Source of the DNA: Mytilus californianus
Lineage: Eukaryota
Direction of reading: 5' to 3'
Assembly: GCF_021869535.1 (NCBI RefSeq)
Contig: NW_026262637.1
Coordinates: forward strand, 30,566,001-30,630,000
Length of the DNA: 64,000 nucleotides
Shown here: positions 4,100 to 59,000 of the stretch, piece by piece
How the letters are laid out: each line of letters starts with the position of its first letter
Position numbering within the stretch: the stretch's first letter is position 1
Notes under the pieces: generated by a model
Databases searched by the model: none
Told to the model about the DNA's origin: nothing
What the model saw: the letters and a program-made list of their open reading frames with translations, nothing else
Program-made: the position numbers and the translations under genes

Positions 4100-4929
4100 C
4101 ATCTTGAACAGTAAATCGGCAACAAAGTAGCAACACTTGGTCAGCACCTCATAAGGAACATTCATGCCATGTTTGGTTTCATTCCATTCAGTGGTACTCT
4201 AAAAGAAGACATTTGTATGTATTTCCAATAGGGTCCTATGTTAGACTAAGCCCCCCCCCCCCTAGCGGCCATCTTGGATGATGGATCCACTGCAAAGTAA
4301 CAACACTTGGTCAGCACCTCATAAGGAACATTCATGCCATGTTTGGTTCCATTCCATTCAGTGGTTCTCTAAAAGAAGACATTTGTATGTATTTCCCGTA
4401 GGGTCCTATGTTAAACTAAGTCCCCGCTGTCGGCCATCTTGGATGATGGACCGACTACAAAGTAACAACACTTGGTCAGCACCTCATTAGGAACATTCAT
4501 GCCATGTTTGGTTTCATTCAATTCAGTGGTTCTCTAAAAGAAGACATTTGTATGTATTTCCCGTAGGGTCCTATGTTAAACTAAGTCCCCCACTGGCAGC
4601 CATCTTGGATGATGGATCGGCTGAAAAGAAACAACACTTGGTCAACACCTCATAAGGAACATTCATGCCATGTTTGGTTCCATTTCATTCAGTGGTTCTC
4701 TAAAAGAAGACATTTTGTATGTATTTCCCGTAGGGTCCTATGTTAAACTAAGTCCCCCACTGGTGGCCATCTTGGATGATGGATCGGCTGCAAAGTAACA
4801 ACACTTGGTCAGCACCTTATAAGGAACATTCATGCCATGTTTGGTTTCATTCTATTCACTGGTTCTCTAAGAGAAGACATTTGTATGTATTTCCCATAGG
4901 GTCCTATGTTAAACTAAGTCCCCCGTTGG
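4100..4929. repeat. Satellite-like tandem array, about 166-bp unit x5 (left part)
   Basis: CAACACTTGGTC at 4131, 4301, 4466, 4632 and 4799; units are near-identical. Confidence 0.95.
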
Positions 4930-7679
4930 TTTTACTTAAACATCTGCAAAAAGAAGGATCCGCAACAGCGAAAATACTTGAGCGAGACCTTTATGTTGAT
5001 AACATTTTATCAAGCGTTACTGATGAAAAAGAAGCCATCAATTACTTCACAGAAGCAAGACAACTGATGCTAAAAGCTGGATTTAACCTTCGATCATGGA
5101 CTTCGAATAATGGACAACTTTGTCAGCAAGCCGCCAAAGAGGATGTATTAGACACCGACAAACAGACAAAGATCCTAGGAATGCGCTGGAACGTTGAAAA
5201 TGATGAACTTACGTATTCAAAACGGACAGTCGTACCAGCACAAGGAGATGAAAAAAGTATTACAAAACGTGAAATTTTGAAGGAATCATCTAAAATATAC
5301 GACCCGCTTGGATTATTGAGTCCAGTAAGCATTAGAGCTAAGATACTTATACAAGACTTATGGAAAGGAGGTTACGACTGGGACGAGATTTTACCACATG
5401 CGTTACTATCAGAATGGACCCGTTTAGCTCAAGACATAGAAACCGCTACAGAAACCACTTTTTCTAGGCACTATTTTGATGAGAGTAGCGAGTCATCGCA
5501 AAAAGTACTGCATGTATTTGTGGACGCAAGTATGAAAGCTTACGGAGCAGTTGCGTATTTAAACAACGAAAAGGACACTTCACTGGTAATGGCAAAAACA
5601 AGAGTGGCGCCTCTTAAAAAACTTACTTTACCACAACTAGAGTTAATGGCTGCAGTAATAGGAGCCCGTTTAGCATGTCATCTTCAAACTACATTAAAAT
5701 GTTCAAATATTACACTATGGTCAGATAGTCAAATCGTATTACAGTGGATAAAGACTACCAAAACATTAAAACGTTTCGTTTCAAATAGAATCAATGAAAT
5801 TAAGAAATTAACAGACAACTGTGAATGGAAGTATTGCCCGACAAATTACAACCCTGCTGATTTACTATCACGTGGTATGACTACGAAACAGTTCAAGGAA
5901 AGCACGTTATGGAGAAAAGGACCGATTTGGATAGGTGATAAATCAAAACACCCGAAAACATTTATAGAGATAAATACAGCTTTATCCGTATTTACCGACG
6001 ACGACAAAGAACCATTAGACGATGAAGAGAGCAAAACTTGCGAAAATGATATTCAGTATGGAATAGACAGAATTATAGATATTAACAATTATGGATCATA
6101 CAAGAAACTTTTGCGAGTGTCAGCCTTTGTCCATCGATTTATTCACAATTGTAGAACAGTCAAATCTTTTAGAAACGTTGAAGCAATGACACCAGATGAA
6201 CTACAGCAATCAACAATATTATGGATACGATGTTGTCAAGCGATAGCATACCAAGATGAAGTTCGCGCACTAAAGCTAAAACAGATACAGAAAACTAAAT
6301 TGCCACGACTTCAACAACTTCAGTTATATTTAGATAACAACGATTTAATGAGATGCAAAGGAAGAATTCATAATGCGCCAATACCCGAATCGGCAAAACA
6401 CCCTTACCTTTTACCGCCAAATCACCGATTATCGGAACTTATTGTATTAAACTCACACGAACTAGTTTTACATTCTGGAGTTAATGCCACGGTTACACAA
6501 GTTCGTCAAACATTTTGGATTCCGTCGTTGCGTCAATTTACGCGCAAATTACTATATAGATGTACAACATGTAAAAGAGTTATAGGAAAACCATACAGGG
6601 CACCAGACCCTCCTCCGTTACATAAAATACGACTTCAAGAAGCCCCACCGTTTACCGTCACTGGTGTAGATTTTTCTGGAGCTCTTCATATTAAGGAAAA
6701 GAACGGAACATTCATTAAAGCATACATATGTTTATTTACCTGTGCATCGACAAGAGCCGTTCATTTAGAGGTTGTACCCGACATGACAGAAGAATCATTT
6801 TTGTTAGGATTCAGAAGATTTACTTGTAAAAAATCCTTACCACATGTTATGATGTCAGACAACGCTACATCTTTTATTTCAGCATCACAAGAGATTAAAC
6901 AACTGTGTGAATCCCAGAAGATCAAAGAGACATTATCTACGCATGGAGTCGAGTGGAGATTTATCCCTAGCCGAGCCCCGTGGTTCGGAGGATGGTGGGA
7001 GAGACTTATTGCATTAACTAAAACGAATTTAAAGAAAATACTTGGACGTGCATTGATTAACATGGAGACACTGCAAACGTTAATTGCCGAAATTGAAAAG
7101 ATTTTAAATGATCGACCATTGACTTATGTATCTACAGACATTGATGACAGTGAACAATTAACACCGGCCCACCTACTATATGGTCGTCGTATTACATCTG
7201 TACCATATCCGAGAATTGAGATAGATAATATTGATGAAACTTACGTAATGAACACGTCTGATGCTTCAAAGCGTGCACAAAGACTTTCGTTTATAATTGA
7301 ACAATTTTGGAACCGTTGGAAGTCCGAATATTTAACAGCACTTAGAGAGTTTCATAAAAAGAGTGGAGACAACAAAATCAACATCCGGGTCGGAGATATT
7401 GTACAAGTTCATGACGACAAACCTCGAAATCGGTGAAAAATAGCAATTGTTGAAGAATTAGTTGTTGGAAATGATGGTTTAATCAGATCTGCAACTATCA
7501 GAACAAACAGTGGCCGTACGACTCGCCCAATCGTCAAACTTTATCCACTAGAGATCAACGAAGAGGAACTACCAAATAAAGCAGATGAGACGAATGAAGT
7601 TGATACCAGAAGAACAGTGCCTATGCGAAAGGCAGCTATGCGTGCAAAGGAGAACATTAAAACTTGGACAATATCTTAG
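4930..7679 (+). pseudogene. BEL/Pao pol remnant with one premature stop
   Basis: Open from the junction to TGA at 7434-7436 (CGG TGA AAA, where R-W-K is expected). The frame continues KIAIVEELVVGNDGLIRSATIRT...RPIVKLYPLEI to TAG at 7677-7679. Confidence 0.85.
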
Positions 7680-23812: not shown

Positions 23813-25465
23813 TCAAGATATCAAGTTAAGCGTTACTGTAATAATTTCAGTCTTAAGTGGCATCGGAATGGGCAGTTTCAGAACTTTAGCCATCTTCCGC
23901 TTGCAGTTTTTCAATATAAGATATTGGCACTCCTTCTTCAATGTCCAATAATTTAGTATATCTGTCGTGAAGCTTATAATTTTGTTTTTAAATTTCATTT
24001 GTTCGGGTGTGTCTTCAGTTTTATAATCGTTCGTGTTGTCCATTATTTCCTTGACGCATTTATACGACATCATATTTAAAATATTCAAAAAAATATCCAG
24101 ATCTTTAGTAGTGAGTGTTTCTACGGTGTAACAAACAAATTGTTCGAATATCAAGCTAACCGGATAGAGTCCATTGCATTCTATTTCAGGATCTGCACCA
24201 TATTTTAATAATAACACTAGACTCTTTGTGTCTAACCCAATCAAAATGGACATATCACAAAAAGAGTGGAATGCAGTCCCCATCAACGACCCGTCCTCGT
24301 TAACTCGTCCTATTTGCTGCAGATTTGCTCCGTGACGAAGAAGGATCTCCGTACACTGTTGCAACATTCCATAAATCGTTTTGAATTCTATTTCAGCCTC
24401 TAAATGGAGGTTTAAACTACATATATTCGAATAGAAACAATGAAGTCCAGTAGAGTATGCTAATCTCCCAAATGCAGTTTGAACATTTAGATTTTCGTGA
24501 TCAATCTCAAATTCAATTTCGTCGAAATTCGAATTAGCACCAGCGTTCAGCAGCAGTACTATACAAGCAAAAATGTAAGGAAGTTTTTCTGGCATATCAT
24601 AACATTTCACATACAAGCACAACAAACTGTACAAAGGATAAGTTCTGAAAGGTATATTTGAAGCAACACTGTGTCCATGACGTATTAGAACAGTGGTCAC
24701 TGTCGGTAATGCTTCAACCCAGTTCTTGTCAAACAGAAAACTGTAGGAATAAAGGACATGGTAAAGGTTCATTCCTCCGAATAGTGATCTCAAATCTGGA
24801 TGTAAACGTAATAAAATATCCAGACATTCTGGTTTGGCTAATTTTAAAGCTGCTCCGACAGCACTTTTTATATCATCGTCTGTTGGGGACTCTGACAACA
24901 AAAGCCTCAAAGCTGAAGGCGAATCGAGTTGGCATGCCATGTTGATGTGGGCGTCCTTGCCAGAGAACTTACATCTGCCGTGATATCGACCTAAACAATG
25001 ATCAAGTATTAATTTCACACATCTAATATGGCCACCTTTGCCAGCAACATCAAGTGGAGTAACTTCGGTTCGTTCATCGCCGTCTGTTGGTTTCATGTAG
25101 TGTTTTTGGCTAAGCGACTGATACTTGAAGTTAGTAGCTTTATTATCATGAGGTCTGTCCTGTAAAAGGAGTCCAAGTATAGTTCTGTATCCAAGTTTGG
25201 CAGCAAGATGCATGTAAGATATTGAATGATACTCGTGTGGTGGCAGAAAAAATCCTTTAAAAAATAAAACTGTCACAGCTTCAATATTATTGGCGATAAT
25301 GGCATGGTGAAGGACATCCAGATCATTGTCATCGAGGTAAGATTCAATTTCTATTTTCGACAACTTGTCTACTTCTGACTTCACAATTTTTGTATCGGCA
25401 AAAGTTTGAACAAGTTGTATGAGAGATTGAACTGCTCTTGTATTTGAATGTTGGCGTCTGTTCAT
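23813..25465 (-). CDS. Ankyrin repeat and SOCS box protein (ASB-like), 550 aa, single coding exon
   Basis: Ankyrin-like repeats (DVLHHAIIANNIEAVTVLF, YMHLAAKLGYRTILGLLL, TPLDVAGKGGHIRCVKLIL) and a C-terminal SOCS-box pattern WTLKKECQYLILKNC...KLPIPMPLKTEI. Possible 5'-UTR intron 25732-25474 (AAG|GTAATG...TATAG). Confidence 0.88.
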   Translation of the reverse strand: MNRRQHSNTRAVQSLIQLVQTFADTKIVKSEVDKLSKIEIESYLDDNDLDVLHHAIIANNIEAVTVLFFKGFFLPPHEYHSISYMHLAAKLGYRTILGLLLQDRPHDNKATNFKYQSLSQKHYMKPTDGDERTEVTPLDVAGKGGHIRCVKLILDHCLGRYHGRCKFSGKDAHINMACQLDSPSALRLLLSESPTDDDIKSAVGAALKLAKPECLDILLRLHPDLRSLFGGMNLYHVLYSYSFLFDKNWVEALPTVTTVLIRHGHSVASNIPFRTYPLYSLLCLYVKCYDMPEKLPYIFACIVLLLNAGANSNFDEIEFEIDHENLNVQTAFGRLAYSTGLHCFYSNICSLNLHLEAEIEFKTIYGMLQQCTEILLRHGANLQQIGRVNEDGSLMGTAFHSFCDMSILIGLDTKSLVLLLKYGADPEIECNGLYPVSLIFEQFVCYTVETLTTKDLDIFLNILNMMSYKCVKEIMDNTNDYKTEDTPEQMKFKNKIISFTTDILNYWTLKKECQYLILKNCKRKMAKVLKLPIPMPLKTEIITVTLNLIS

Positions 25466-27777: not shown

Positions 27778-28512
27778 AACAAGTCTAAATTGAAAACAAC
27801 GTTCAAACCTATGATTGCGTTGGATAAAAACCGCAATTTTTATACGTGTGCATGCAAAACAAATTTCTTGGTAGAGGGGTCTAAATACAGCACAAACAAC
27901 ATTTTCCAAAAGACCAAATGAGTGAAAAAGTATATTTTAACAAAACGCATTTGACTAGCAGGTCGAACAACTGATGTTCTTAAACCCTGCTGACTGCCAT
28001 TGGCGATTGCCAAATAAACGGATCACAAGATGTAACAAATGGATCTTATTATTAAATTATTACCAAACAGAAAACAATAAACTTGCGGGAAAGATGGTAT
28101 ACCGCAAACATGAGGTGCAAAAATTTGTACACTGGGCATATCCGGATTTCGACAATTAATGTCTCTTCAGTGATGTTAGGAATCGAAACGGTATTTGGAA
28201 GGCCATATAATTTATCTCAATTTAGGATAGACTCTTGAATTTTGAAAGAGTCAAAATAGGATGAACGGATCATATAAACCCGAAGGCAAATATAATACAA
28301 GCCCAAACGAAAAAATATAAACAAGTCTAAATTGAAAACAACGTTCAAACCTATGATTGCGTTGGATAAAAACCGCAATTTTTATACGTGTGCATGCAAA
28401 ACAAATTTCTTGGTAGAGGGGTCTAAATACAGCACAAACAACATTTTCCAAAAGACCAAAATGAGTGAAAAAGTATATTTTAACAAAACGCATTTGACTA
28501 GCAGGTCGAACA
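27778..28512 (-). mobile_element. Retrozyme-like insertion: 542-bp unit plus 192-bp terminal redundancy
   Basis: 27778-27969 and 28320-28512 are identical apart from one base in an A-run. A hammerhead motif lies in the unique part. TATATATTAGATATTA occurs on both flanks. Confidence 0.65.
28128..28177 (-). ncRNA. Minimal type I hammerhead ribozyme motif
   Basis: Minus strand: AACAUCA-CUGAAGA-GACA(UUAAU)UGUC-GAAA-UCCGGA-UA|UGCCCAGUGU. Intact core, 4-bp stem II, palindromic stem III, AUA triplet, predicted cut between 28139 and 28138. Stem I needs a 4-nt bulge. Confidence 0.65.
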
Positions 28513-28949
28513 TATATATATATATTATATATATCTATATATTAGATATTAGATATACTGTTCCCAGGGGTAAACGTTCACTGGAATTATTTCAAAACGT
28601 TCACGACGTCGAAAGTCTAGAAAACGCCGGTAGTTTTGGTATCACAATGAGTTGTGTTAACATACAAGTATACCAAAAAGGAAGTCTCAACATAATCTTG
28701 CTAGCAAAAAAGATAAAGAAGGGTGCCCTATTGGTATCGTGAAGCCGATTCCAAGAGCCAATTAAAACCATAAGTCGTAGAAAAACAGGCAGCATCATCG
28801 CCAAAAGAAGGAAAAAAAAACGAGAAGACAAACAACAGTCTACAAAACATGCTTCTTTTGTCCATTATTCTCTATTCTGTAAATCCCCATCCAGACCCTT
28901 ACACGTGGATTCCGATGAATAGTGCAGCAAAAATTATTGAATAAAGAAA

Positions 28950-29282
28950 ATATATATGGATGGTGTCATAACATTTATTGTTAACTCATTAACGAACATT
29001 TTATGCAAGAGATATGCAAATAAAACACATAAACGAGCATTGCCAGGTGATACTAAGAATTTCAGAATAAGAATATATGCACAACTTGCCGAGTTTTTCC
29101 CCCAGCTTCAGTCCGAGATATATATCCATTCTGGACACACATCTGCATTCAGATTTATACCAGGATTTACCCTCGGATTTCGATGGTCCTTTTTAATAAA
29201 AATATGCTCTTGTGTTCGATATGAAACATATATATGTTGTAGAAATTTTCGGAAACACAGACAAAATTAATGTCATGTGCCT
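28950..29282. mobile_element. Probable DNA transposon fragment ending ...GTCATGTGCCT|TTAA
   Basis: Kolobok-like YY|TTAA terminus directly downstream of the BTB gene stop; no matching left end found. Confidence 0.3.
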
Positions 29283-29348
29283 TTAAAAATCTACCGCGTT
29301 CTGTCCTAAGATATGATAAGTTAACGTTGGATTGGTGCTATTAGAATT

Positions 29349-30884
29349 TTAATCACTTTCTTGGTAGTACCCTGGGGAATCATAAAACTCTTCTTCCAGA
29401 TTTATATATTTGTCTATACTATCATGGTCACTGTAACTATGATCTTCATAACTATCATTACTCCAACTGTCGTGTTCATCTCTGTCATGATATTCCTCTG
29501 GTGATGGTGACCGACTACACATTTTTACTCCTACCCACAGACAATTGGGGTAATTCGTTTTTGTCAATACAGTTCCACAGAAAGAGTAAAAATATCCGCG
29601 CTTACTTCCAGGTTTATTGATTTTTATCCCAGCTGTATCGTCGGCAAAACCCGAGCCATACGGGCCGAATATGTTGCCAAAATTAGAAGTAAATCTCAGA
29701 CCCATTTCTGTTGTATTGTAAAAGCTCTCAACTTTAATAATAACTTCATTCCGTTGTAATATAAATCTCTCTTCTGATAATTCTATATCAGAACATTTCT
29801 TGCTGCATGTCTTTCCCTTGCTGTCTTCGTGTGTGACGCTCAGATCTTTACCACTTCTGCAAGTTACTATAATTTTATTGATCCTTGTTCTAGCTTTTTT
29901 TTTGTCCAATGTACTGCAAAGACATCTCGAGACAAAAATTCTGATTTCCGAAGCACGATCATCCACAAATTCAAAATCCCTTGTCCAATTATGTCCATGA
30001 TAATCATAATGGTATTCCATATTTCTCCAGTATCCTGAAAATTTCCTGACCTCGGACCACTTCTTTGGCAAAAGTTGGTCTATCGATTGATTTCTCGGGT
30101 ACTGTATATAAAGTAGAACAGTTCTGATAGCATCACTATCATATACTGTAGTGTAATTTTCTAATGTTTCAACTACGTCGTGAAACGGAATTTCCGTAAA
30201 TTTGATAGACCATAAAAGAGAATCTACGTTAAGTTTTTCGATCTGATCATCAGCTTTGTTTGAGATATATTCTAGTACAACCTTCAGCAACTCCAGTTCT
30301 ACGTTTTCGGCCGGAATATCAAATATCAAAACCGATAAATTTTCATTTGACAGCAATGTTTTCAACTGATCTACGGAAAGGGAATCGAAAAGTCCTTTCT
30401 TTTTAACATCTTCAAAATTCTTCGTAATAAATGAGCACACTGCTTTCTGTTGTTGCAGTAAACCCAAAGTGCATGTTAAGGTTGAAACTTTTACAAGGTT
30501 GTCAAAATCAACATGCACATGCCTTTTCATGAAATTTACCGTTGCCTTTTTCATGCCATCTACTTTCAGAAGAACGGCAGCTTCATATAAATCCATTGCA
30601 TTGTTCTCTGTTATTTTTATTTCCCCACTGTACGCAAAATGTACGATAGTTTCTAGTATTTCAGAAGAAATATCATCTATTATGAAAAGTTCCTGTGATG
30701 AATGATCTTGAAACAGTGTCTCAAAAAAATCAGAAAAAGATGTCAGAATTAGTTTATGTGCGGTGACCTTTACTACGCCAGACTGCAGAATAACATCACA
30801 ATACTTCCTGGCTTCACGAGCTTCGTTTATTTTAAGGCAGATCTGTCTTTGGTAATGCTTTTCTCTGAATGTACAGTAAGACAT
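29349..30884 (-). CDS. BTB/POZ-BACK protein with a C-terminal jacalin-like (beta-prism lectin) domain and an acidic tail, 511 aa, single coding exon
   Basis: BTB: YCDVILQSG...AHKLILTSFSDFFETLF...ETIVHFAYSGEIKITENNAMDLYEAAVLLKV. BACK: FITKNFEDV...FDSLSVDQLKTLLSNENL...ELELLKVVLEYI. C-terminal RFILQRNEVIIKVES...GLRFTSNFGNIFGPYG...GYFYSFCG fits the jacalin pattern. No Kelch repeats. Acceptor TTTCAG upstream at 30912-30913. Confidence 0.85.
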   Translation of the reverse strand: MSYCTFREKHYQRQICLKINEAREARKYCDVILQSGVVKVTAHKLILTSFSDFFETLFQDHSSQELFIIDDISSEILETIVHFAYSGEIKITENNAMDLYEAAVLLKVDGMKKATVNFMKRHVHVDFDNLVKVSTLTCTLGLLQQQKAVCSFITKNFEDVKKKGLFDSLSVDQLKTLLSNENLSVLIFDIPAENVELELLKVVLEYISNKADDQIEKLNVDSLLWSIKFTEIPFHDVVETLENYTTVYDSDAIRTVLLYIQYPRNQSIDQLLPKKWSEVRKFSGYWRNMEYHYDYHGHNWTRDFEFVDDRASEIRIFVSRCLCSTLDKKKARTRINKIIVTCRSGKDLSVTHEDSKGKTCSKKCSDIELSEERFILQRNEVIIKVESFYNTTEMGLRFTSNFGNIFGPYGSGFADDTAGIKINKPGSKRGYFYSFCGTVLTKTNYPNCLWVGVKMCSRSPSPEEYHDRDEHDSWSNDSYEDHSYSDHDSIDKYINLEEEFYDSPGYYQESD

Positions 30885-31669
30885 TCCAGTTCTGTAAAAT
30901 TAGGCCCGAGCCTGAAATAAAAAAAAACTATAATTTTGTTACTGGTACGTCTGATATATTCGATTTGTTTACATTTAAAAGGCTTTTTGAAGATTGTATT
31001 GACTGTTACGGCAACTTGGGGACTTACAACACTTGGTTTTGTCTTGTCAAAATGTAGTTTTATATTTATATATCATACTATTTAGAAAAAAAACATAAGA
31101 GGAGTGAATGTGTATGTCACAGAGCCTCAGAGGGTTGCAATTAGAAGCGAAATGATATGGATGACCTTCTATAATTGCAACCCTCTGAATCCCCACTTTC
31201 TTTTCAAATCAGCAAGAATATATATCTTGTCAATAAATTATGCATAGAATTTAAGAAAATCGTTCATGTTTAATAGGGCATACATAAAATTCCATGACAA
31301 AAAATATCTTTCTGAATAGTCACATCAGTCCTAAAATATTGAAATTGTATTTTTTATATTTGGTGGGATTAAATCAGCATTAAAATGTCAATGTCTTATT
31401 CTTTTTTGTCATATGTGTGCATGCTTTCTTTCTTTCTCGTGGTTCAATAAAAAAAAATATGAAATATTCCTTTAATGTTTCCTCTGGAGGATAGTTAATA
31501 TGACAATGTGTTTCCTTTAAATTCCCCAATGTATTTTAACATACGGTATTTTTTCAGAATTGGAAACTGTATATTTATCTGTGACTAAAGGAGGATTATA
31601 TCTGTAAGTCATAGAGTTATGACAGTCGTGTAAATGTTCAGGTTTTTTTTTATTTACATCTTAACTTAC

Positions 31670-32071
31670 CTTTCAGATCAAAGTGAAAGTACAACATAAA
31701 ATTTCAGAAAGTGAAAGTAGATTTTAAAATTATGAGAAACGATAAAATATTCTGATCTTATTCTATGTGAATTCTTTCATTTTTTGAATTATTTTAATGA
31801 AACTGAAAAAAATCTACCGGTTTAATCATTATAAAGATTAAAAATATAAAATATGATAATGAATAAGTTAAGGGGAGACAACAACGTTTTAACAGGTGCT
31901 TCATACGGGTACTTTTGGTAACCAACAACAATGATGGCGGCCTACATATGAAAGAAGATCAGCGTTCCATAACATTAGAAACAAACTGCAGAAACCGTAG
32001 ATGGAAAAGCCACTTTTAAATTTGAAATAGTTATATGTTTGAGATAGGTTTGGTTCAATTTTTGCATTAAA
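31670..32071. promoter_or_regulatory. Putative bidirectional promoter region shared by the BTB-jacalin gene (-) and the dynein gene (+)
   Basis: Minus-strand donor GAAAG|GTAAGT at 31669 can pair with the acceptor at 30913. YY1-like ATGGCGGCC near 31935 and a half X-box GGTAAC at about 31917. The dynein ATG is at 32072. Confidence 0.45.
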
Positions 32072-35000
32072 ATGGATGAACGGCATTGGTGGATCGCTGG
32101 AAAGATCCAGGAAAGTTTCAAAATTGGTGGATATGACAACCCTACTCTCCTTGAAGATTTTATGACCGAGCAAAATAATCTTAACAAAATAAACAAATTT
32201 CTAAAAGCAGGGGGGCCATGTAGATTGTTTTTCTACTGTGAAAAATTGCCTGAAGGAGAATTGGCAACCAGTCATTTACATGTGACTGGCACACTTGCGT
32301 CGCTGAAAGATGCCAACTTGGACCAGTTGAATGTGTTGTATTTCTTGAGGAATAGAGTTGACAAAGATGTTGATCCAACAAGGATGGAAAGAGATATTTT
32401 CTGCGGTGAACTTAAGCATAATACCATGGAAACACTTACATCATTATTATCAGAAGTTTACATACCATTAATTAAAGCACAGAAAGAATGGGGAGAATGC
32501 AACAATGAAAGCCAAAATAACTTGACTCATAGTATGGATAAATTCCTTACAGCTTTAAATGAATCAACAGCATCCATGGCTAGTTCAAAACAATTGGTAA
32601 AAATAATTTACATTAAATTATATCATGATTATAAAACTTACATGACTTAAGAATTGACATCTCAAAGTGAATATCTTCACATCACATTAATGTCCTATGA
32701 CATGTAATGATGTTTTCCCTTAAAGACCCCAGGTTAACTGGGGCATTTCATTCATTAAACAGAAACTAGAAACTTGTCTATATAATAGCCTTCGCTATTT
32801 TGGTAACTACGACACTTGAACTATTGCCATCATTTATACAACGATCACTTTTCTTTTGTGGTGTCAAAAATTTTCTCTTGTTTGGTCAAAATTTTACAGG
32901 AATGTATCTGGCTTGTCTGTTGTTGAGTAATGGCTGACAAATAGAGAGAAGGTATATTACCCATTTTCTCTCAATACATTGGTACATTCATATCACTAAA
33001 GAGATTTTGGCCTTCTGTTACTTAGGTGTCATAATTATTGTTATATTTGACTCATACTGTGCATGTACTGATTTCATGTCGTGGATGGATACCAAACCCA
33101 TACCATTTGTTTTTCTATTTGATAATTTTTTTACAGTTACATAATGTAGGTTTTTTTCATTTTTTTAAAGGATTAGGGGCAATAAGGCCCTTATTTGACC
33201 CCAATATACTGGTGTAAATTAAAAAGTAACCATACATGTAAAATTGTTCTTAAATTTGTCCTTAACTATACTAAGGTACAAGGTGTTTAGAAAATAAAAC
33301 AAATTTCACATTTAAAGAGTTACCATGACAACATGCTGAAGTGCAGAGCTCCAAATTGTACATGTATGATTTGAAGTTGATAGCAAATTATTTATAGCAG
33401 TAAACATTAGAATTTATTATACTTCATGTCAAAATGACAGATTTTGATTGGTTATAATACGAGGGAGAGAATTTACTTTATCCCATGGCAAATACTCTTT
33501 TACCCTTCACGGAGACGCTTGCTCAAGTGTGCGCTTTAATAAATACAGATGATTGTTATGTACAAGATGACATAGTTTATTACTTTGAATTTGAAATTTA
33601 ATAGACATTAATAACTGAACATTCAGTATAATAAATTAAATAACACATATCTGAGAGAGTGATAGAGCAGATTGTTACCCCTCGAAAAGACAATGTCAAC
33701 CTTGGCTTCGCCTCAGTTGACAATGTTTTCTCGGGGAAACAATCTGCTCTATCACCCTCTCAGCTATGTGTTATTTATATATTGGTACACAATTATTTCA
33801 AGCTGAACATTGGAATGAGATCTAGTCAACCTTATTTTAATAATTAATATTAGATTAACAGGAACTTTTATGACAGAAATTAACCATGTCTCTATTTTTT
33901 TTTTTTTTTAGATGCTGAAGCAGCCAGAAAATGTGATTTTGAATGACTTTAAGATGCAAAGACAAGCAGCATTAGATACACAGCTGATTGGCCAGTATGA
34001 AGAATTGGTAACTGATTGGATGAACACAATAGAAACTATTTTGAGTGACACATCAGATGAAAGGTACATAATTGTAATTTGGCATTCTTTAAATCATCAC
34101 TTCATCTGGATTTTACACCAATGTTTTAAAGTTTTTTTGCACACAAAAAAGTGAGTTGCCATACATTTATGACCAGTCATGTAACATGCATTTTTATTGG
34201 ACTTTTGATTTACTTATTAATGCAATATTTAAATATTTCTTGGAAAGGGGAGTCTGATGAAAATTGTTTACATCTCACTGTTATTGTTGAACTGGTGAAT
34301 TAAAAATTCATTTCACTGTACTTTGTACAATAAACTTTCATGTAAAGTTCAAAAGTTAAATATTAAACCTTTTAACTGAAAACTAACTGGAAACAATCTG
34401 TTTTCAAATATAACCATTCATTAAAGAGATACTATTTAACAACAGAAGTGTAAATCATTCAAGTTTTGAGACTAATAGACAAGAAAGCTTCTTTAAATGT
34501 AGCATAATCCCCATCTGCTTTAGGGGTACTTTTATATTTACAATGTATGTAAAAAGCTTTGATTTAAAGAATAGCATCATTTTCTTATCTTCTTGCTTGA
34601 AACTGATCTTGACTTTCTCTACTAGGAAAGTGGCTTTCCCTGATGAGCCAGCAAGGTGATTGTTTTTCTAACTTGTAGAAGTAGTTTTCATTCTAATATA
34701 CCATAATTGTGCTATTTGTATAATGTGTAGATTTTACAGCAATATTTTTTCCATTACAAGTCATTGATGAGGGACATGCACCAAATGGTAGAATATTAGT
34801 AATCAGGTTTCTTAATTCATACTTAGCAATAGACAAACAATACCAAGATTGAAAATCAGACATTTTTGGGTAAACTGTATTTATATATAATTGATTATGT
34901 TCAGAAAATGAAGAGCATTCAATGTATCTATTTTGACAGAAGCCGTTCATATAAGTCAAAAATTGTTCAATATTGTATACCGTTTTTATTAGAAATCTTT

Positions 35001-38000: not shown

Positions 38001-41000
38001 TTTATAGCAGTATTTTGCTTAAGTTTTTACAGTCTGATACAAGTGAGGTGCATTTTTTATCATTGTTTTAGAAAAGTAATGCTTTTATTTAACACACATG
38101 TTTTATTGTATCTGGTATCTTAAAGGATTTTATTCATGTGATGTTGAGTCGTTGTGTTGTTTTGGTGAGAAAGCTTTTTAATCCAGAAAAACGTTTGATC
38201 ATGAAGTCTTGGGGTATTTACAAATATATTTTTAGCATTCAAAACATGAAATAGAAATAATCCTGAAGATTGAATATTTTAGATTTATGGACCCCAATGC
38301 TGGACCTCTATCTGAGTTGGAGAGATGGCGTAGACGTCAGAGGTTGTTGACCAGTATTACAGAGCAGTTAAAGAGTAAGGAATGTAAAGCTGTTATTGGT
38401 GTACTCATCACTGCCAAATCTAGACTGCTGAAGAAATGGAAAGTTGTTGATGCTTCGTAAGTATTTGAAAAGGTTTTGTAAAGTTGATCATTCAGGACAT
38501 ATATGACATTTAAAGGTTATTTATGTTGTAGATAAGATAATATGGCATTATTGAGTTGTCAAAAGAACTGAATTTCACCACAATATTTTGACATCAGATT
38601 TTTTTCTGTACGGAATATTTTTCAGTCTCCAAATTTGTTGATAAAGTAAGTTTTAAAGTCTGCAAGCATAGCTTCTAAGCCTTTCAAAATCACTTTGGAA
38701 ATAAAATTAAAAAAAAAAAACAGTGACTCTTTTGAAAAAAAAATGAAATCAATAATTTATTGTATGCTATAATGGTATGTTCATGACTGAAGAATATTTT
38801 AACATAACAGCTCTTTGAATTTGATACATAGTTGGATTATTGAAAATGACCCATATATTAAAAAAAAAAGATCTATTATTGTCAATTAACTCCAATCATG
38901 TGGTAAATCTTATACATATGAATGAAATTTTTGATGTTATCTTTTGTAAGAAAAATTATCTGTTTACATTTTCATTGAATTTTACAGAATTACAGATGCC
39001 ATGAATGATACCAAAGACAAAGTGAAGTATTTGGAATCCCTTAGACGTCATTTTGATCAGCTCTACCATGATGCAACACCTGCTTCAATTATAAACAATG
39101 CTATCCCAGGAATCACAAACAGTGTTCGACAGATGGATTCCATTTCCAGGTACTATGCCAGGACAGGGTTTCTTGGTATAGTATTTACAAAAATAACCAA
39201 TCAGTTAGTATTAGCTTGTAAAGAATATATTAGGAATTTTACCAGTAATGTATATGATGAAGATGAACTTTGGGGGAGGATAGCCGAGGAAATCAAACAC
39301 AGAGAACTTCTATCAACTGTTGATCCACAACAGAGATTACTAAGGAGTCAAGTGGAGTCAAAACTAAAGGTACAGTTTAATACTTTCCTTTTAACAACAG
39401 GAACCTTTTATTTTTTATAAATCTATGTGTATGAGTGAGATTTGTAGATTTCTATAAAGTACTGTTGTAGAAGAAACACGAATAAAGGCCTTTTCTGAAA
39501 GGCAGATTGTTCATTTTTTTGTCATCAAATAATGAAGAAGAAAAAAACGAAAATTAAGAAATATATATCTTAAAAGTTAGACATATTTTAAAAAAATGAG
39601 AGTTAAGATGTTAGTCAATGACTTTATTTGAAATTCCTGTATATATCATATTTGTTCTTTAGGGAGGTATGCAGAGAAGTAAAACCAAAGAAGGAAAAGA
39701 TCTAGGATTACAAGATGATAGTCTGTATGGTCGTCTGAGGGCATGCCTGTCATTACAAGGCTTTTACAGGGACACACTTCGCTCATTAAAAGATGCTCTG
39801 GGACAGTCACAGAACTTGTCACACTTCCCTTCCATCAGTAGTATGGGAGGCTTGGGTTCTGTTAAGTAAGTTATTGTTCAAGTTCACGTTTGATTTTTAG
39901 TTTAAACATATTTTATTTGTTCAAGTACAAATTGGATAAGACACAAGTCAAACAGACTTATGAAGTCTTCTCCATTCAACATTTATAGCAATATAATACA
40001 AAATATATGTATGAGCATGCATGTATAGAATGGTATATCTATTTAATATATATATATATATATATATGGATTTATGTCAAAAGACAGAAAAGTGAAGACA
40101 GAAAGAAAACAATAATACAGAAAAAATAAATAAATGAATATTTAGAAAACAAAAACAAAAAATAAAATACAAATTAAACAAAAAAAAAAAAGAAAAAAAA
40201 AGGAAGACTTTTACTTAGATGATGATGTGTGTGCGATCATGGTTTGCTATCTAGACAATTAGAAATCTTTCCGAACTTTTAATAAACTCGAAGACATTTT
40301 TGAAAATGGTTTGGTTTTGCTCTAGAGAAAGAAGACAACTACCCGAGGTTAGTAGTTCTATGTTAATTTTACAATCTTTTGGAAGCCAGCGCAGACTTTC
40401 AAACATTTTATTTCGTATGTCTGAATATAATATACATTTAAAAAAGAAATGATAGGAATCTTCACGATTAACACCACAGCGGCAAGAAGGGTCAGAAATA
40501 ATATTGACCCTATATAGATCATAGTTTAAGGATGATGCAAAACATCGAAGTTGGGTTAGAATAATATTCAGTTTTCGAATTCCAAACTCATATTGCTTCT
40601 GTACAAATATGTTACTCTGAGGGTAAAGTTTTTTTAGTTCAGTTTTAAATTTATTTATTGATTCCGCATCACGAGTTGAATCATCAAGATTATTCCAAAG
40701 ACGTATGGTTGATGGAATAAATGAATCATTAGTCAATGCTAGTCTGCAGAATGGAATAACGATGTCATTTCCATTGCGTAGAGGATAGACCGTCATACTT
40801 TGGATTTTTGGGGGAATTAAATTTGTCAAATATTCTGGAACATTATTTTTTTGAATATTATAAAACATTTGAATTTTTCTTCTCTCTCTTCTTTCAGCTA
40901 ATGTTTCCCATCCAAGTTCTTCATAAATAACCCTTGAGCTTGTGAATATAGGTAACCCCGTAACTATTCTAGCAGCTTGGAGCTGTAATTGTTCCAGTTT

Positions 41001-44000
41001 ATTGATATAACCTACCCCAATGTTATCCCAAACTTCACTGGCATACTCAAATAAAGGTCTTATAAAAACTAAATATAGTTTTTCTAAATTTTTTCTGCTC
41101 AGTTTATATTTCAACTTCCTTAGCATATTTATATGTTTAGATGTGCTTAAGATAATATTATCAACGTGGACATTCCATTTAGCATCATTGCTAAATGTAA
41201 CCCCTAAATGTTTATGAATATTTGTAATAGGTATATTTTTATCATTGAATATAAAGTTCATTTCTGGGATTTCAACATTAGAAAATAACATAATTTCTGT
41301 TTTATCTGGATTAAAAGACATTAACCATTTTTTGGACCATTCGTTCAGCTTTTCCAGATCATGGTTTATCACAGTTTCTATCTGCAATGCATCACGATCC
41401 GCACAGCTGAACGACGTGTCATCTGCAAAGAGTCTGCACAGAGAAATAAGGCTTTCTGCAATATCATTAATATATATTATAAAAAGTAATGGTCCAAGGA
41501 CCGACCCTTGAGGGACACCAGCTGAAATACTGCAAAGTTTTGAAGAAGATTGCTTGATAACCACTCTTTGTTTTCTATCACTTAGGTAGCTTCTAAACCA
41601 TTTTAACAGATTTCCATTTATACCATAAGCCTTCATTTTATGTAATAAACCATCATGCCAAACTTTATCAAAGGCTTTGGAGAAATCGCAAAAAACAAAA
41701 CAACTTATCTCTTTCTTTTCAAGTGAGTTCAATATGCAATTATATATTTCTAACAGTTGGTGAACCGTTGAACATTTAGGAAGAAAACCCGATTGATACT
41801 CATAAATTAACTTATTTCTTTGTAAGTGGTTGTAAACATATTTATATATAACACGTTCCATGACTTTGCCTATGCAACTAATGAGTGATATAGGTCTATA
41901 ATTGGAAGGTAATGAACTATCCCCCTTTTTAAATAAGGCTATAACATTTGAAATTTTCCAGCTGGATGGATACTTGCACTGCTGCAAGGATTTATTAAAT
42001 ATTATACAACACGTTTGATCTTATGCATATACAATCAACACATAAAAAGGTTTAAGATATATGCTTCCTTTTTAATACAATCTTATAAAGCAAACAAAAT
42101 TTCCTTGTATCAACCTCAATTTGAGGGTGAAGTTTTGAGCCTAGTAGAAAAATAGTATGTTTATGACAAGTGCACAAGAATAAAAATTCAAACAAAACAT
42201 TTTCACTCTTTCAGGATAAAGAAAATTATTCATTGATTGAATTTCATTTTATACTTTTCATTATGAATTTTTTTCAGATCAAAACCAGGCACTAGTGATA
42301 AATCCCGTGGAAGTAGTTTAATGGTATCACCAAAGAAAGGAATATCTGCTCTGGATACCCAAGGTCATGGCGTGTCAATAGCTGATGATGATGCTGTAAT
42401 GTCACATATGGACTCTTTCTGTACACGGATTAAACAGCTGATAGACGTCATCAATACCCTCTCTCAGTACAACAAGTAAGTTATGTAGGAAAACATTTGC
42501 ATACATAAACCAGCTGATAGATGTCATCAATACACTGTCTCAGTACAAGAAGTAAGTTATGCAAGAAATCATTTGCATCCATAAAACAGCTGATAACTCT
42601 CTCAGTACAACAAGTAAGCTATACATGAAATCATTTGCATAGATTAAAAATTTGATAGATGTCATCAATACCCTGTCTGTTAAGTAAATAATGCATTGAA
42701 TGATATTCACACATAAAAGATCTGATTGATGTTAACATGTTTCCTCAGCACAATAGCTTGGTCAAGTAAGTTACACATGGAACAATTTGCACTCATGAAA
42801 TGTCTGATTAGTGTCATCAACACGCTATTTCTGCACAAGTAAGTTTTTACATGGAATCAGTGCATACATAACACATCTGATTGATGTCACTAACATAAAA
42901 TTCATGCAATTAGCAAGGTATGCATAGATTCATTTTATGTTCATGAAATAACATCAATATCAACAACACAATTTCTATGTACAATATTAAAGTAAGTTTA
43001 TATTCAGTTCTCAAAATCAGATGAAGTATGTTTAAAAATTGATAGCTCTCCTCTATATTAATACAAATTGGCGGATATAAAGTTTTCAAATCTGACACAA
43101 GGGGAGGCAGATTGCATGACATTTGTATGAATATAAAAAAGAACTTCTTTTGTTTTGTAATCTGCTTAAACTTTCCCTTGAAATTCATCCTCTGCTTCAT
43201 GAAAATTTAATATTCAAAACCTTGACATGTCACATTTTGTACACAGTTGCTATTTCCTATTCTTATAGATAATGTACACTTACATAAAATTTATATTGTT
43301 TTATTAAGTTTTTATTAATTTTTAAAAAGTTTTGAGACCTTGTTATTTTTCCAGGATGGTTACTTTGACAGCTGGTATGCCTAGACTGAGGAAAGATGAT
43401 TTTGTATTTGAAGATGAAACAGAGAAAGAAGAATACAAGTATAGAAAGCGACAACAAGAAGCCAGAAAGGCATTAGGTTTGATATTTTTTCTGCATTTAT
43501 TTTATGACATTCTCTGATAATTGGTTGTCTCTCTTTAAAACCAGATGATACAGAAATCACAATAATTGAAAACTGATGTATTGAGTCAAAGAAATGTAAT
43601 GTGAACATATATATTTTTGATCATGGTAATTTTTATGTTGCTTTTATCATCTTTAATTGACAATCTCATATAAGTGGAACATTTATACATGAGAATGATC
43701 TTATATTTTTTTTATTATTCATGCATAAGTTGTATTCAAAAATATATGACAAATCTAATTAAAACAAAATATTGGATAACATTAACATTTTTCCCACTGA
43801 AAAAGTTATATAAAATGAAAAGTGAAACTTCATCAATTTACAATTTCACGAAATAAGAATATTCCTTATATTCACACTTGTTCTTTTCTTTGTAAGTAAT
43901 TTATGAAAAAAAGATGATTATAAACATTGGTAACATTTACCTGCATATTTTTTTTCTTGGTGAAGTTAGTATTTTGATTTGAACTGTTTTACAGTAAATT

Positions 44001-56000: not shown

Positions 56001-59000
56001 ACAGTTCTAAAATTATCTGCTTCATTATCATAAAATGATTAGTATGTGAAAGGGGAAGAGAGTGATGCATTTTGACAAATAGGAGGAATACAAAAAAACA
56101 GAAGGATAAGTAAAGAAGTCTACAGGCAACTACGTTCATGATTATTTAGGACAAGCAGCAATAAAAAAGAATTGAATGGAAGACTAGCAGAGGTGCACAA
56201 AAAATTTAGACATTCATCATACACTGATATTTCAATTTGAAACTTAACATGGAATTGACCAATGAATCATAACTAAAAATGTTTCATCGATGTTAAAACA
56301 TGATATTGTAATTATCGTCTGCTTAATATACGTTTTACAAGTTAAGCTGAAAATTAAGAATGTTTTGTTTTGATTTATGTTGAAATAACAGATATTGTGG
56401 ACTTGTCAAGTTGTTTAAAAGTTCTGTGTAGAGTGTTTATGTTCAACTTACTTAGCTGTTAGAATCCTTAATCTTAATGTTTGCAGTGGTAGGATAAAAT
56501 GTAGGGATTTCTGTTACTAGTATTAAAACCACTACTATCTTGTACATATTATGGTTTTTTTTATCAAATACAAAATACTGAAAGTTAAGTAATGGAAAAT
56601 AGAATTTGACAACTTTTTGGTTGTTGTGATAAGTAATTTGATTCAACCAATTGTTGGAGGAATGAAAATTTATATTGTGTCCTTTGTGAAGTTACTATAT
56701 GATGTATCTTGATAATGAAAAAAAAACAACAATGGAATAATACAAAAGAACATTCTCATCATTTAACATGTATATCGAACTGAATGAAAAAATTATTTTG
56801 ACTCCCTGAAATTAGAATGTTGGATTGGATCCTTATTTGGGCCTCTTTACAATGGAATTATATTTTAATTTAAACGATATGCAATAATGTGAATTTAAGC
56901 AGTGTTCATAGATCCAATGAACAATTGTAAAAAAAACATTTTTGAATTCAAAATTTGAAGCATGTTGGGCTTATTTACTCCTTTTAATTGTTAGTTATAA
57001 ATTATGTTAGGTTAAACTATACTCAGGTCAAAATGTAATTTTGACTTATATGACATACTAGGGTTCGTAGTAAAGAACAGTTTTTTTTGTACTTTCAGGA
57101 AATAAGGAATCGTCATTGGTCCAGAGTTATGTTTGTCACACACAGTTCATTCCCATTAGAAGCCAATGTTTTCAAATTAAAACATCTTTTAGAGATAGAA
57201 TTAATCAAGTAAGTTTTGAAAATTAAGAGGTTTATTTTTATGTATTTGGGGTGTAAAGTATTAACCATCCTACAATTATAAGCCTGGTATCTTTGATTTA
57301 AGTGGAAGCACTTCATACTAAATTGTACGCACTTTTACAACTCAATAAAATTGCAAAAAGAAGCATTCAATTCTTATAATTACATTTATATGCTACAACT
57401 ATGCCATAAAGTGTAGTCATGAATGTTGAATTTTATTGAGAAATACAATTTGATTTTGGAATGTATCGTGATTGCTTTCAGCCAATCAATAGTACAGATT
57501 CTTATGAAATAACATGTAATTAAGAGTTGATTCATTCTGAAAATGTACATTCAGTTAAGAAACTTGTGTGTTAATGCAAACACAAAACATCCTCTATGAA
57601 TAAATGGAGATGTAAGGTATATGCCAAGCAGACGGCAACCCTACAACTTGAAAAAAAAACAAACATATCTAGAGATCAGTTTATGCTGTAATTGCATCTC
57701 ATGTTTTGGAAACAGAAAAATTATGAATTAAAATGAATATTTTTCTTACAATATCTCACCTGTGATTGAAGGAAAATCTGTAACTTTTTTTTCATCATCC
57801 CCATTGGCATTGTCTTCCTCTTAGGATAAGAATAAATACAATAAGATATAGCATGAAATCAATATAATTAATGATGTCTTTGAATATTTTGTTTGTTATA
57901 ATATGATTTGATTGAAATTTTCCAGACACAAAACAGAAATAGAAGAAATCTGTCATGGTGCAGCCAGAGAATTGGAATTAGAGATCAAAATGAAAGTAAC
58001 AGAGGAAGAATGGACCGAACAAGTGTTAGCATTTGAACATTACAAGAAACGTGGACCCATGTACTTAGACAAAGCCTTTACTGAGAGACTATTAGAACAG
58101 TTAGAAGACTCTCAGGCTTTACTAGCTAACATGTTAACATCTAAATATATAGCTCCACTGAGAACAGAAACAGCATCTCTGGCAGTCAAACTAAAGGAAG
58201 TGGCTGAAGTCTTAGAATTGTGGTTAGAAGTACAAGATTTATGGCAGTATTTGGAAGCTGTCTTCACCAATGTTGCTGCTGCCAGGGTTTGTTTACTTTA
58301 TTGATGAATTAAATACCTGTTTTGATTAGTATGAATGTTTACATCAATACCTCTATAACTTGATTAAAGTAAAATTCTTTACATGTTATGGTAAAATATC
58401 ACAAGAAAAAAAATCTATGTACATCTTGTTGTCTTTGGATGTGATGTTAAAGTAGCATTTAGTAATTTAGACAATAAGTTCAATCCATACTATTAGTAAA
58501 TCTTTACTGCTTTACAGAAATTAACAAATATTTGTGATTTTTTTCTTGAATTTCATAAGGTTTGCCTTATTTTGTTGCACGTTATGGTAAATTGGCTATT
58601 GTTGTAAGTTTTCATAAATTAAAATTTTCCATTATTTCAAATCAGAAATTGTGATGAAAAGGAAAAACTAATGAACTATTATAAATAAATCTAAATTGCA
58701 GTACATTGTTGACAAGCAGTGTTATAGACAGTTTTCTCTTTTTGTTTAGGAACTGCCTCAGGAAGCTAAAAGGTTTACCAGAGTAGATAAAACTTGGATG
58801 AAACTGATGAAGAAGGCATTTGATACAAGGAATGTTCTTCAGGTATGAATGATAAGTTGAACTCGGTTTAAATGTCTAAATTCTCTTCAAGTAACCTAGC
58901 TTAAACATAGATTTGTTAACCTGATCTGATGAAATAGTGTTACTAGGATGTTTTAAAACATTCAGGTCGTTGTCAACAGTTATTTAAGGATGCTTATACA

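Follow-up and report, generated by a model that had tools for sequence, protein, structure and literature searches.

A BTB-BACK protein of Mytilus with a predicted jacalin-type beta-prism in place of a Kelch propeller and without the canonical sugar-binding residues

What would a BTB-BACK protein recognise if a lectin-like domain stood where a Kelch propeller is expected? The question is raised by a gene on the minus strand (29349-30884) of a 64,000-nucleotide stretch of Mytilus californianus DNA (contig NW_026262637.1, positions 30,566,001 to 30,630,000; the whole stretch is referred to as the window), for which a first-pass annotation had proposed a sugar-sensing substrate adaptor for the cullin CUL3, built from BTB, BACK and jacalin domains. 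Among BTB-BACK adaptors the known recognition domains are Kelch, PHR and a few others. The reading that we favour, and consider probable, is that the 511-amino-acid (aa) protein is a BTB-BACK adaptor of the CUL3 type whose recognition module is a rebuilt, non-canonical beta-prism, and that it is not a sugar sensor. Nucleotide positions follow the numbering of the window and domain coordinates are given as aa of the 511-aa protein.

The layout of the protein is as it had been read from the letters. The open reading frame (ORF) is intact, Pfam places a BTB and a BACK domain in its N-terminal half, and Kelch gives no Pfam match in the 511-aa protein even at E<=10. The peptides quoted earlier for a jacalin-like region at about 29550-29990 lie at aa 373-437 (29574-29768), and the acidic tail noted there corresponds to aa 457-511, with a net charge of -15. 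The N-terminus is polar and charged and, read by eye, shows nothing hydrophobic ahead of the BTB domain, in agreement with the apparent lack of a signal peptide. The features of the coding region are as follows.

29349..30884, minus strand: complete single-exon coding sequence of 511 aa plus stop codon (29349-29351), from the ORF list, with an ATG start and no internal stop.
30522..30827, minus strand: BTB/POZ domain, aa 20-121 (PF00651, E 1.2e-21, 77.3 bits; PDB matches to KLHL3, KEAP1 and KLHL22).
30177..30464, minus strand: BACK domain including the 3-box region, aa 141-236 (PF07707, 22.9 bits for a cut-off of 20.9).
30009..30176, minus strand: linker between BACK domain and prism, aa 237-292, in which W276 and R280 are invariant in three family lineages (full-length alignment A8).
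29517..30008, minus strand: predicted degenerate jacalin-like beta-prism I domain, about aa 293-456, net charge +8, from Pfam, profile and structural evidence.
29352..29516, minus strand: acidic tail of 55 aa (aa 457-511), rich in Ser, Asp, Glu, Tyr and His, from composition and charge.

Homology to KLHL BTB-BACK structures extends past the BACK domain to approximately aa 255-266 (KLHL3, 4hxi, was aligned over aa 18-255), and the Jacalin core matched by Pfam covers aa 330-438 (29571-29897). No Pfam match to an F-box or FBA domain was obtained in the 511-aa protein at E<=10. The orthologue is also modelled as a single-exon gene in three other Mytilus genomes, and within the 64-kb window tblastn turned up neither a further copy nor a fragment of it.

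The jacalin assignment starts close to the Pfam cut-off of 22 bits, with the whole protein scoring 21.0 bits and the C-terminal half alone 23.3 bits. An exhaustive profile search with the prism domain (aa 275-460) against 1.8e9 representatives gave, besides its own cluster, a reciprocal match at E 6e-5 to a tandem (2x) jacalin protein, P0004, which itself scores 78 bits with Pfam Jacalin. The alignment of the two spans about 70 residues, with the common motif L-x-F-T-[ST]-N-x-G-x-x-F-G-P-Y-G. Profiles seeded with the prism and P0004 then retrieved PF01419 proteins in 11 of 11 and subsequently 88 of 90 matches. A feature search with ESM over aa 280-458 likewise placed Jacalin clusters on top (0.86, 181 shared features), which is taken as a lead only. 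The profile of the prism found nothing among the PDB sequences even at E<=10, the solved jacalins being out of reach by sequence alone. One further candidate, the 1526-aa repeat protein P0005, was treated as spurious; it has no Jacalin match and aligned only to profile positions 6-51, at E 7e-4.

The fold was predicted with AlphaFold2 from a 78-sequence alignment of the prism, giving a predicted TM-score of 0.60 and a mean predicted local distance difference test score (pLDDT) of 58.9, with the core at aa 308-415 reaching 70-90. A prediction of the full protein made without an alignment had a mean pLDDT of 35.4 and was not used. When the prism model was compared with 48,161 chains by VIA-align, the first 17 ranks were all jacalin-type beta-prism I structures (Z 6.6-9.2), including champedak lectin, lamprey LIP and the Arabidopsis nitrile-specifier protein, NSP, together with the Parkia lectin, ZG16, WGA16, Calsepa, Heltuba and the bivalve lectin PPL3A, these last six at Z 8.2-9.2. 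Other beta-prisms followed at Z 4.9-6.2 (domain II of a Cry toxin, VMO-I and a Vibrio cytolysin), and unrelated folds appeared only below Z 4. The top 50 Foldseek matches were nearly all jacalin-related lectins, and the shape matches in the ESM Atlas were all jacalin or beta-prism clusters. The beta-prism I fold that the first-pass annotation had named as support is what all three comparisons returned, and profile and model together support the assignment of the C-terminal domain as a jacalin-type beta-prism I in place of the Kelch propeller.

Relatives with the same architecture were found outside Mytilus. A search with the full-length protein by word index, a tool of low sensitivity, returned Mytilus orthologues only, and the distant full-length relatives were found later through genomic context. 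A fragment among the profile matches, P0006, lies on a 23-kb ENA contig (L001) that carries an intronless gene for a 486-aa protein, P0097, with Pfam scores of 84 bits for BTB, 49 bits for BACK and 33.7 bits for Jacalin; it aligns collinearly with the Mytilus protein along 450 aa, with 23% identity (BLASTP, E 4e-22). A metagenome scan added a 505-aa single-ORF member, L002, from another sample. Besides the two linker residues listed above, H296 at the start of the prism is invariant across the three lineages in alignment A8, and the conservation of the linker argues for one ancestral fusion. In the ESM Atlas a 67-member cluster, with proteins about 501 aa long (BTB in 100%, BACK in 88%, Jacalin in 87%; commonest phylum Mollusca), is the top match both for the Mytilus protein (0.96, 201 shared features) and for P0097 (0.95), and may be the Mytilus protein's own cluster. 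On contig L001 a second tandem BTB-BACK-jacalin copy at 5228-6420 (plus strand) is split into three overlapping ORFs, and could be either a pseudogene or the product of frameshift errors in a 2.9x-coverage assembly.

The BTB-BACK-jacalin architecture is thus shared by a family, mostly molluscan, that numbers at least 67 proteins, and is not unique to this gene. The first-pass annotation had known of no characterised animal protein of this kind, and no characterised member was found. No paper describing the architecture was found in the literature searched (BTB, BACK, jacalin, bivalves or molluscs, cullin), where the bivalve jacalins were the secreted Pteria PPL2-4 shell lectins. The 'BTB' of one retrieved paper proved to be a typographical error for BPBT lectins (PMC8878817). 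In databases the orthologues are named 'KLHL1_4_5' or 'kelch-like protein 7', names that rest on the BTB-BACK part only. Since there is no Kelch match and the C-terminal domain is predicted to be a beta-prism, the Mytilus protein is not a KLHL member, and the present assignment corrects names that mislead for proteins without Kelch repeats.

Whether this prism could hold a sugar depends on a small number of residues. Canonical jacalin-related lectins hold the sugar through the GG loop, the beta7-beta8 loop and the GxxxD binding loop. These positions were compared in alignment A5, in which four Mytilus orthologues stand beside 74 non-Mytilus sequences (78 in total).

GG loop: Y-G-G-x-G-G in the relatives (Gly in 54-58 of about 62 aligned), Y-H-G-H-N-W with a 3-aa TRD insertion in Mytilus.
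Key-1 Asp: present in 59 of 71 relatives, N336 in Mytilus.
Key-2 Gly and Asp: Gly in 57 and Asp in 67 of 74 relatives, N390 and M394 in Mytilus.
Beta7-beta8 loop: G-P-Y-G-G-x-G-G in the relatives, G-P-Y-G-S-G-F-A-D-D in Mytilus.
Key-3 binding-loop Asp of the primary site: present in 64 of 74 relatives, G437-T-V-L-T441 with an 8-aa insertion in Mytilus.

Keys 1 and 2 are those of the two pseudo-symmetric GxxxD motifs. One of the four conserved GG-loop glycines is left in the Mytilus protein, and all four orthologues lack all three GxxxD aspartates, which are complete in 51 of the 78 aligned sequences. The intact GG loop and binding-loop Asp to which the first-pass annotation had looked for support are therefore missing, with Y-H-G-H-N-W and T441 in their places. 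Five insertions are specific to Mytilus (aa 301-303, 321-333, 350-360, 413/418-419 and 443-450), all of them in former GG or GxxxD loops and several rich in Lys or Cys. The Asp of the primary site is also absent from P0097, L002, P0006 and P0004, whose last strand has the common pattern G-[TA]-[VI]-V-x-T-Q. Within the beta7-beta8 loop, aa 412-415 (29640-29651) read GFAD, GFAE, EFGG and DFPK in four Mytilus species, between invariant flanks.

These losses bear directly on the proposal that the protein is a cytosolic lectin adaptor of an E3 ubiquitin ligase, in which the jacalin domain would bind glycans of ruptured endomembranes or of microbes and present them to CUL3 as an analogue of FBXO2/Fbs. 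The predicted fold and the jacalin homology are what such a protein would show, as are the apparent lack of a signal peptide and the homology of the BTB-BACK part to CUL3 adaptors. P0097 and L002, moreover, still have the GPYGGxGG loop and a single GxxxD motif out of three, and a basic prism (+8) could bind sulfated or acidic glycans. ZG16p and WGA16 are jacalin-related proteins reported to bind glycans of this sort. Set against this, all three aspartates and three of the four glycines are gone from the Mytilus prism, the primary site holds T441, and the primary-site Asp is missing from the relatives as well. The PPL lectins, very divergent bivalve proteins that contact sugar, keep exactly these residues, Gly in the GG loop as well as Asp in the binding loop (PMC6769917). 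Given that divergent sugar-binding lectins retain what Mytilus has lost, canonical mannose or galactose binding by the Mytilus prism is unlikely on the aligned residues, and we judge the lectin adaptor as a whole an unlikely explanation. What stands of the earlier proposal is the architecture, the apparently cytosolic location and the idea of a CUL3-type adaptor, while canonical sugar sensing falls with the motifs.

The same losses could be read as decay, with the gene a fusion drifting towards a pseudogene, or even an annotation artefact. Only a handful of homologues were reached by sequence search, and expression is low, at 1-5 reads deep in stranded RNA-seq run X21, of which about 6% was sampled. 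The orthologues, however, are intact: they measure 511-516 aa and share 93% identity in M. coruscus (the closest sequence compared, at a synonymous distance, dS, of 0.078), 87% in M. trossulus and about 86-87% in M. galloprovincialis and M. edulis, so that the ORF is preserved in at least five Mytilus species. In three other Mytilus genomes the gene lies, as in the window, between a divergent dynein heavy chain gene and a gene for a 550-aa ankyrin-repeat protein. The pairwise ratio of nonsynonymous to synonymous substitution (dN/dS) is 0.28-0.40 for the whole gene. By domain it is 0.25-0.58 for BTB, 0.16-0.34 for BACK and linker, and 0.33-0.41 for the prism, with a value of 0.84 in the closest pair, where substitutions are few. 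The tail, at 0.04-0.21, is under stronger constraint than any other part of the protein and is nearly invariant across four Mytilus species.

Transcription is specific to the strand of the gene. In run X21 positions 29036-30875 are covered with first mates on the plus strand only, and reads on the plus-strand dynein exon at 32164-32715 have the opposite orientation. In runs X1 and X2, from another study, coverage is confined to transcribed blocks; run X15, flat at about 50x, looks like DNA. With strand-specific transcription in two studies, a dN/dS of about 0.3 and conserved synteny, the BTB-BACK-prism gene is functional and expressed, and decay, a very improbable reading, is effectively refuted by RNA-seq and dN/dS. 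Since the prism is still under purifying selection, its binding face looks rebuilt and not decayed. The features that delimit the transcript are as follows.

28996..30905, minus strand: strand-specific transcribed block of about 1.9 kb, from RNA-seq and RNA-derived contigs.
30912..30927, minus strand: polypyrimidine tract with AG (AG at 30912-30913), about 27 nucleotides upstream of the ATG, from the sequence.
28974..28979, minus strand: AATAAA polyadenylation signal about 370 nucleotides past the stop codon, from the sequence.

The tract at 30912-30927 may be the 3' splice site of an intron in the 5' untranslated region (UTR), or the transcript may start nearby; no splice joint for the 5'-UTR was seen in RNA-seq reads within 28300-33800. 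RNA-seq depth is zero over 30876-32163 and the RNA-derived contigs end at 30905. At the other end a transcript contig from run X1 extends down to 28996, where the high-copy repeat at 28852-29035 hides the exact 3' end.

A profile of the family's BTB-BACK part matched KLHL22 best (E 8e-32, profile positions 18-266, covering BTB and BACK), followed by KBTBD2, KLHL3 (E 2e-29, 28-285), KEAP1, KLHL11, gigaxonin and KBTBD4, all of them CUL3 adaptors. An alternative that we hold rather unlikely is that the protein is not an E3 adaptor at all, its BTB-BACK part serving as an oligomerisation scaffold that presents multivalent prisms in a structural, sequestering or signalling role. Numerous BTB proteins without CUL3 binding have a scaffold of this kind. 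The phi-x-E motif, which is not recognisable in the shortened Mytilus loop, would fit such a scaffold, as would a BACK domain barely above the Pfam cut-off and the good scores that BTB-zinc-finger proteins also obtain with the BTB part. BTB-zinc-finger proteins are mostly not CUL3 adaptors. Nevertheless, the best matches over the full span of BTB and BACK/3-box (KLHL22, KBTBD2, KLHL3, KEAP1 and KLHL11) are all CUL3 adaptors, the BACK domain is clearer in the relatives P0097 (49 bits) and L002, and a BACK domain after a BTB domain is typical of CUL3 adaptors.

The reading of a CUL3-type adaptor with a rebuilt prism has several points to contend with. In the BTB domain the alpha3-beta4 loop of Mytilus has lost 4 residues relative to KLHL3 and KLHL22. 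For the CUL3 contact phi-x-E, which is M-S-E in KLHL3 and L-K-E in KLHL22, the candidate equivalents are S-Q-E or F-Q-D, depending on the placement of the gap, with L-Q-E in M. trossulus only. CUL3 binding is a reasonable expectation from homology, and we consider it likely. The AlphaFold2 model of the prism is mediocre, and pLDDT falls below 50 at both of its ends, where the last GxxxD strand and the GG loop are found, so that the motifs were assigned from the sequence alignment. The model was built with an alignment of jacalin proteins, and the fold result is for this reason not independent of the sequence result. Lastly, non-canonical ligand sites are used by some beta-prism proteins, and the loss of the motifs need not mean the loss of all glycan binding.

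For the adaptor with a rebuilt prism the following mechanism is the most likely. By homology, the BTB domain would dimerise and, with the 3-box/BACK region, dock on the N-terminus of CUL3, while the beta-prism, from its place in the architecture, would serve as the substrate-recognition module. The sugar-binding face of this prism appears to have been rebuilt in the Mytilus lineage, the Asp residues and most GG glycines being replaced and the loops gaining insertions, and the ligand would more probably be a protein or non-canonical, possibly anionic, than mannose or galactose. The acidic tail would regulate the protein or bind a partner, and might speculatively mask the prism.

The charges of prism and tail are what suggests such a role. 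In the Mytilus proteins the charge of the prism is +5 to +8 and that of the long tail -14 to -17, whereas in P0097 and L002 the prism is at -3 or -4 and the short tail at -4; the pairing of a basic prism with a strongly acidic tail is thus found in the Mytilus proteins only. A regulatory or partner-binding tail, possibly one that masks the prism within the molecule, is speculative, and attractive because the tail is so constrained. In orthologues of the M. edulis complex, which have 516 aa, a 5-residue acidic insertion, HDRDD, follows aa 470 (window ~29475), and both the 511-aa and the 516-aa forms occur among M. edulis and Logan records. Two ENA metagenome fragments of the Asp-less subfamily, P0014 and P0006, have acidic, aromatic-rich ends. 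From these sequences the acidic tail may be an old feature of the family. A candidate LC3-interacting motif in the tail (Y-I-N-L, with acidic flanks) was rejected, as the equivalent positions of P0006, P0014 and L002 do not fit.

A bolder extension, which we regard as a long shot, would make the rebuilt face a new intracellular recognition surface. Its ligand would be a danger or non-self molecule of polyanionic or glycan-like character, for instance a sulfated lumenal glycan that has become exposed or a polymer of a microbial surface, or else a fast-evolving pathogen protein. The acidic tail would act as a gating intramolecular pseudo-ligand and the family as a set of diversifying CUL3-coupled cytosolic immune sensors. 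Bivalve innate immunity relies on lineage-specific expansions, and if the ligands were danger or non-self molecules the family would bear on it.

Comparison with known systems places the protein between several of them. With the BTB-BACK-Kelch proteins (KLHL/KBTBD) it shares the N-terminal BTB and BACK/3-box, homologous over the whole span, and the layout and size, an N-terminal scaffold followed by a beta-rich C-terminal recognition domain in about 500-600 aa. It differs in having no propeller, in place of which stand a predicted beta-prism I of about 165 aa and the acidic tail, and in the phi-x-E loop, which is shortened or unrecognisable. The jacalin-related lectins (PF01419; ZG16p/ZG16b, WGA16, Pteria penguin PPL2-4, the plant mJRLs and griffithsin) share the fold and the framework motif. 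Those proteins are secreted or free-standing, with GG loop and GxxxD intact, whereas the Mytilus prism is fused to BTB-BACK, apparently cytosolic, and changed at the sites described above.

The sugar-recognising F-box proteins (FBXO2/Fbs1, FBXO6, FBXO27 and plant F-box-Nictaba) embody the same concept of a lectin-type fold on an E3 adaptor. They work in the SCF (Skp1-cullin-F-box) complex with CUL1, against BTB with CUL3 here, and their FBA or Nictaba domains are unrelated to beta-prism I, so the likeness is a functional analogy only; it may not extend to the ligand, as the jacalin sugar-binding residues are absent. That the jacalin prism is a mobile targeting module is seen in the Arabidopsis nitrile-specifier protein (jacalin and Kelch), rice JAC1 (dirigent and jacalin) and the natterin-like proteins, Dln1 and LIP (jacalin and aerolysin). 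Jacalin fusions were among the fold matches (5gqt, 7ywg, 4znq and 5zu4). BTB-BACK is the partner of the prism in none of these fusions, whose sugar sites generally remain functional. A beta-prism I recognition module on BTB-BACK is undescribed in the literature searched and, given the CUL3 role proposed here, would widen the repertoire of CUL3 substrate receptors. A lectin fold recruited into the cytosolic ubiquitin system that lost its sugar site yet remained under selection would also offer a tractable case of a lectin turned protein binder.

The surroundings of the gene add some minor observations. Just past its 3' end lie high-copy repeats at 28300-28667 and 28852-29035, with summed depths hundreds to thousands of times those of their flanks in DNA and RNA runs, on both strands, and with many loose ends and internal joints. 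Downstream of these, the 550-aa ankyrin-repeat protein is encoded at 23813-25465 (minus strand) in a single ORF (Ank_2, 37.7 bits), and in M. coruscus and M. galloprovincialis, too, its gene is the neighbour of the BTB gene. On the other side, dynein heavy chain exons run over 32072-58304 (plus strand; DHC_N1 at 39001-39420, DHC_N2 at 57912-58304), divergent from the BTB gene. The untranscribed spacer of about 1.2 kb between the two genes (30906-32163) may be a shared bidirectional promoter region. Two further ORFs, of 886 aa at 4776-7436 (plus strand) and of 578 aa at 40251-41987 (minus strand), resemble retroelement pol/reverse transcriptase by eye, the second of them sitting within the dynein gene.

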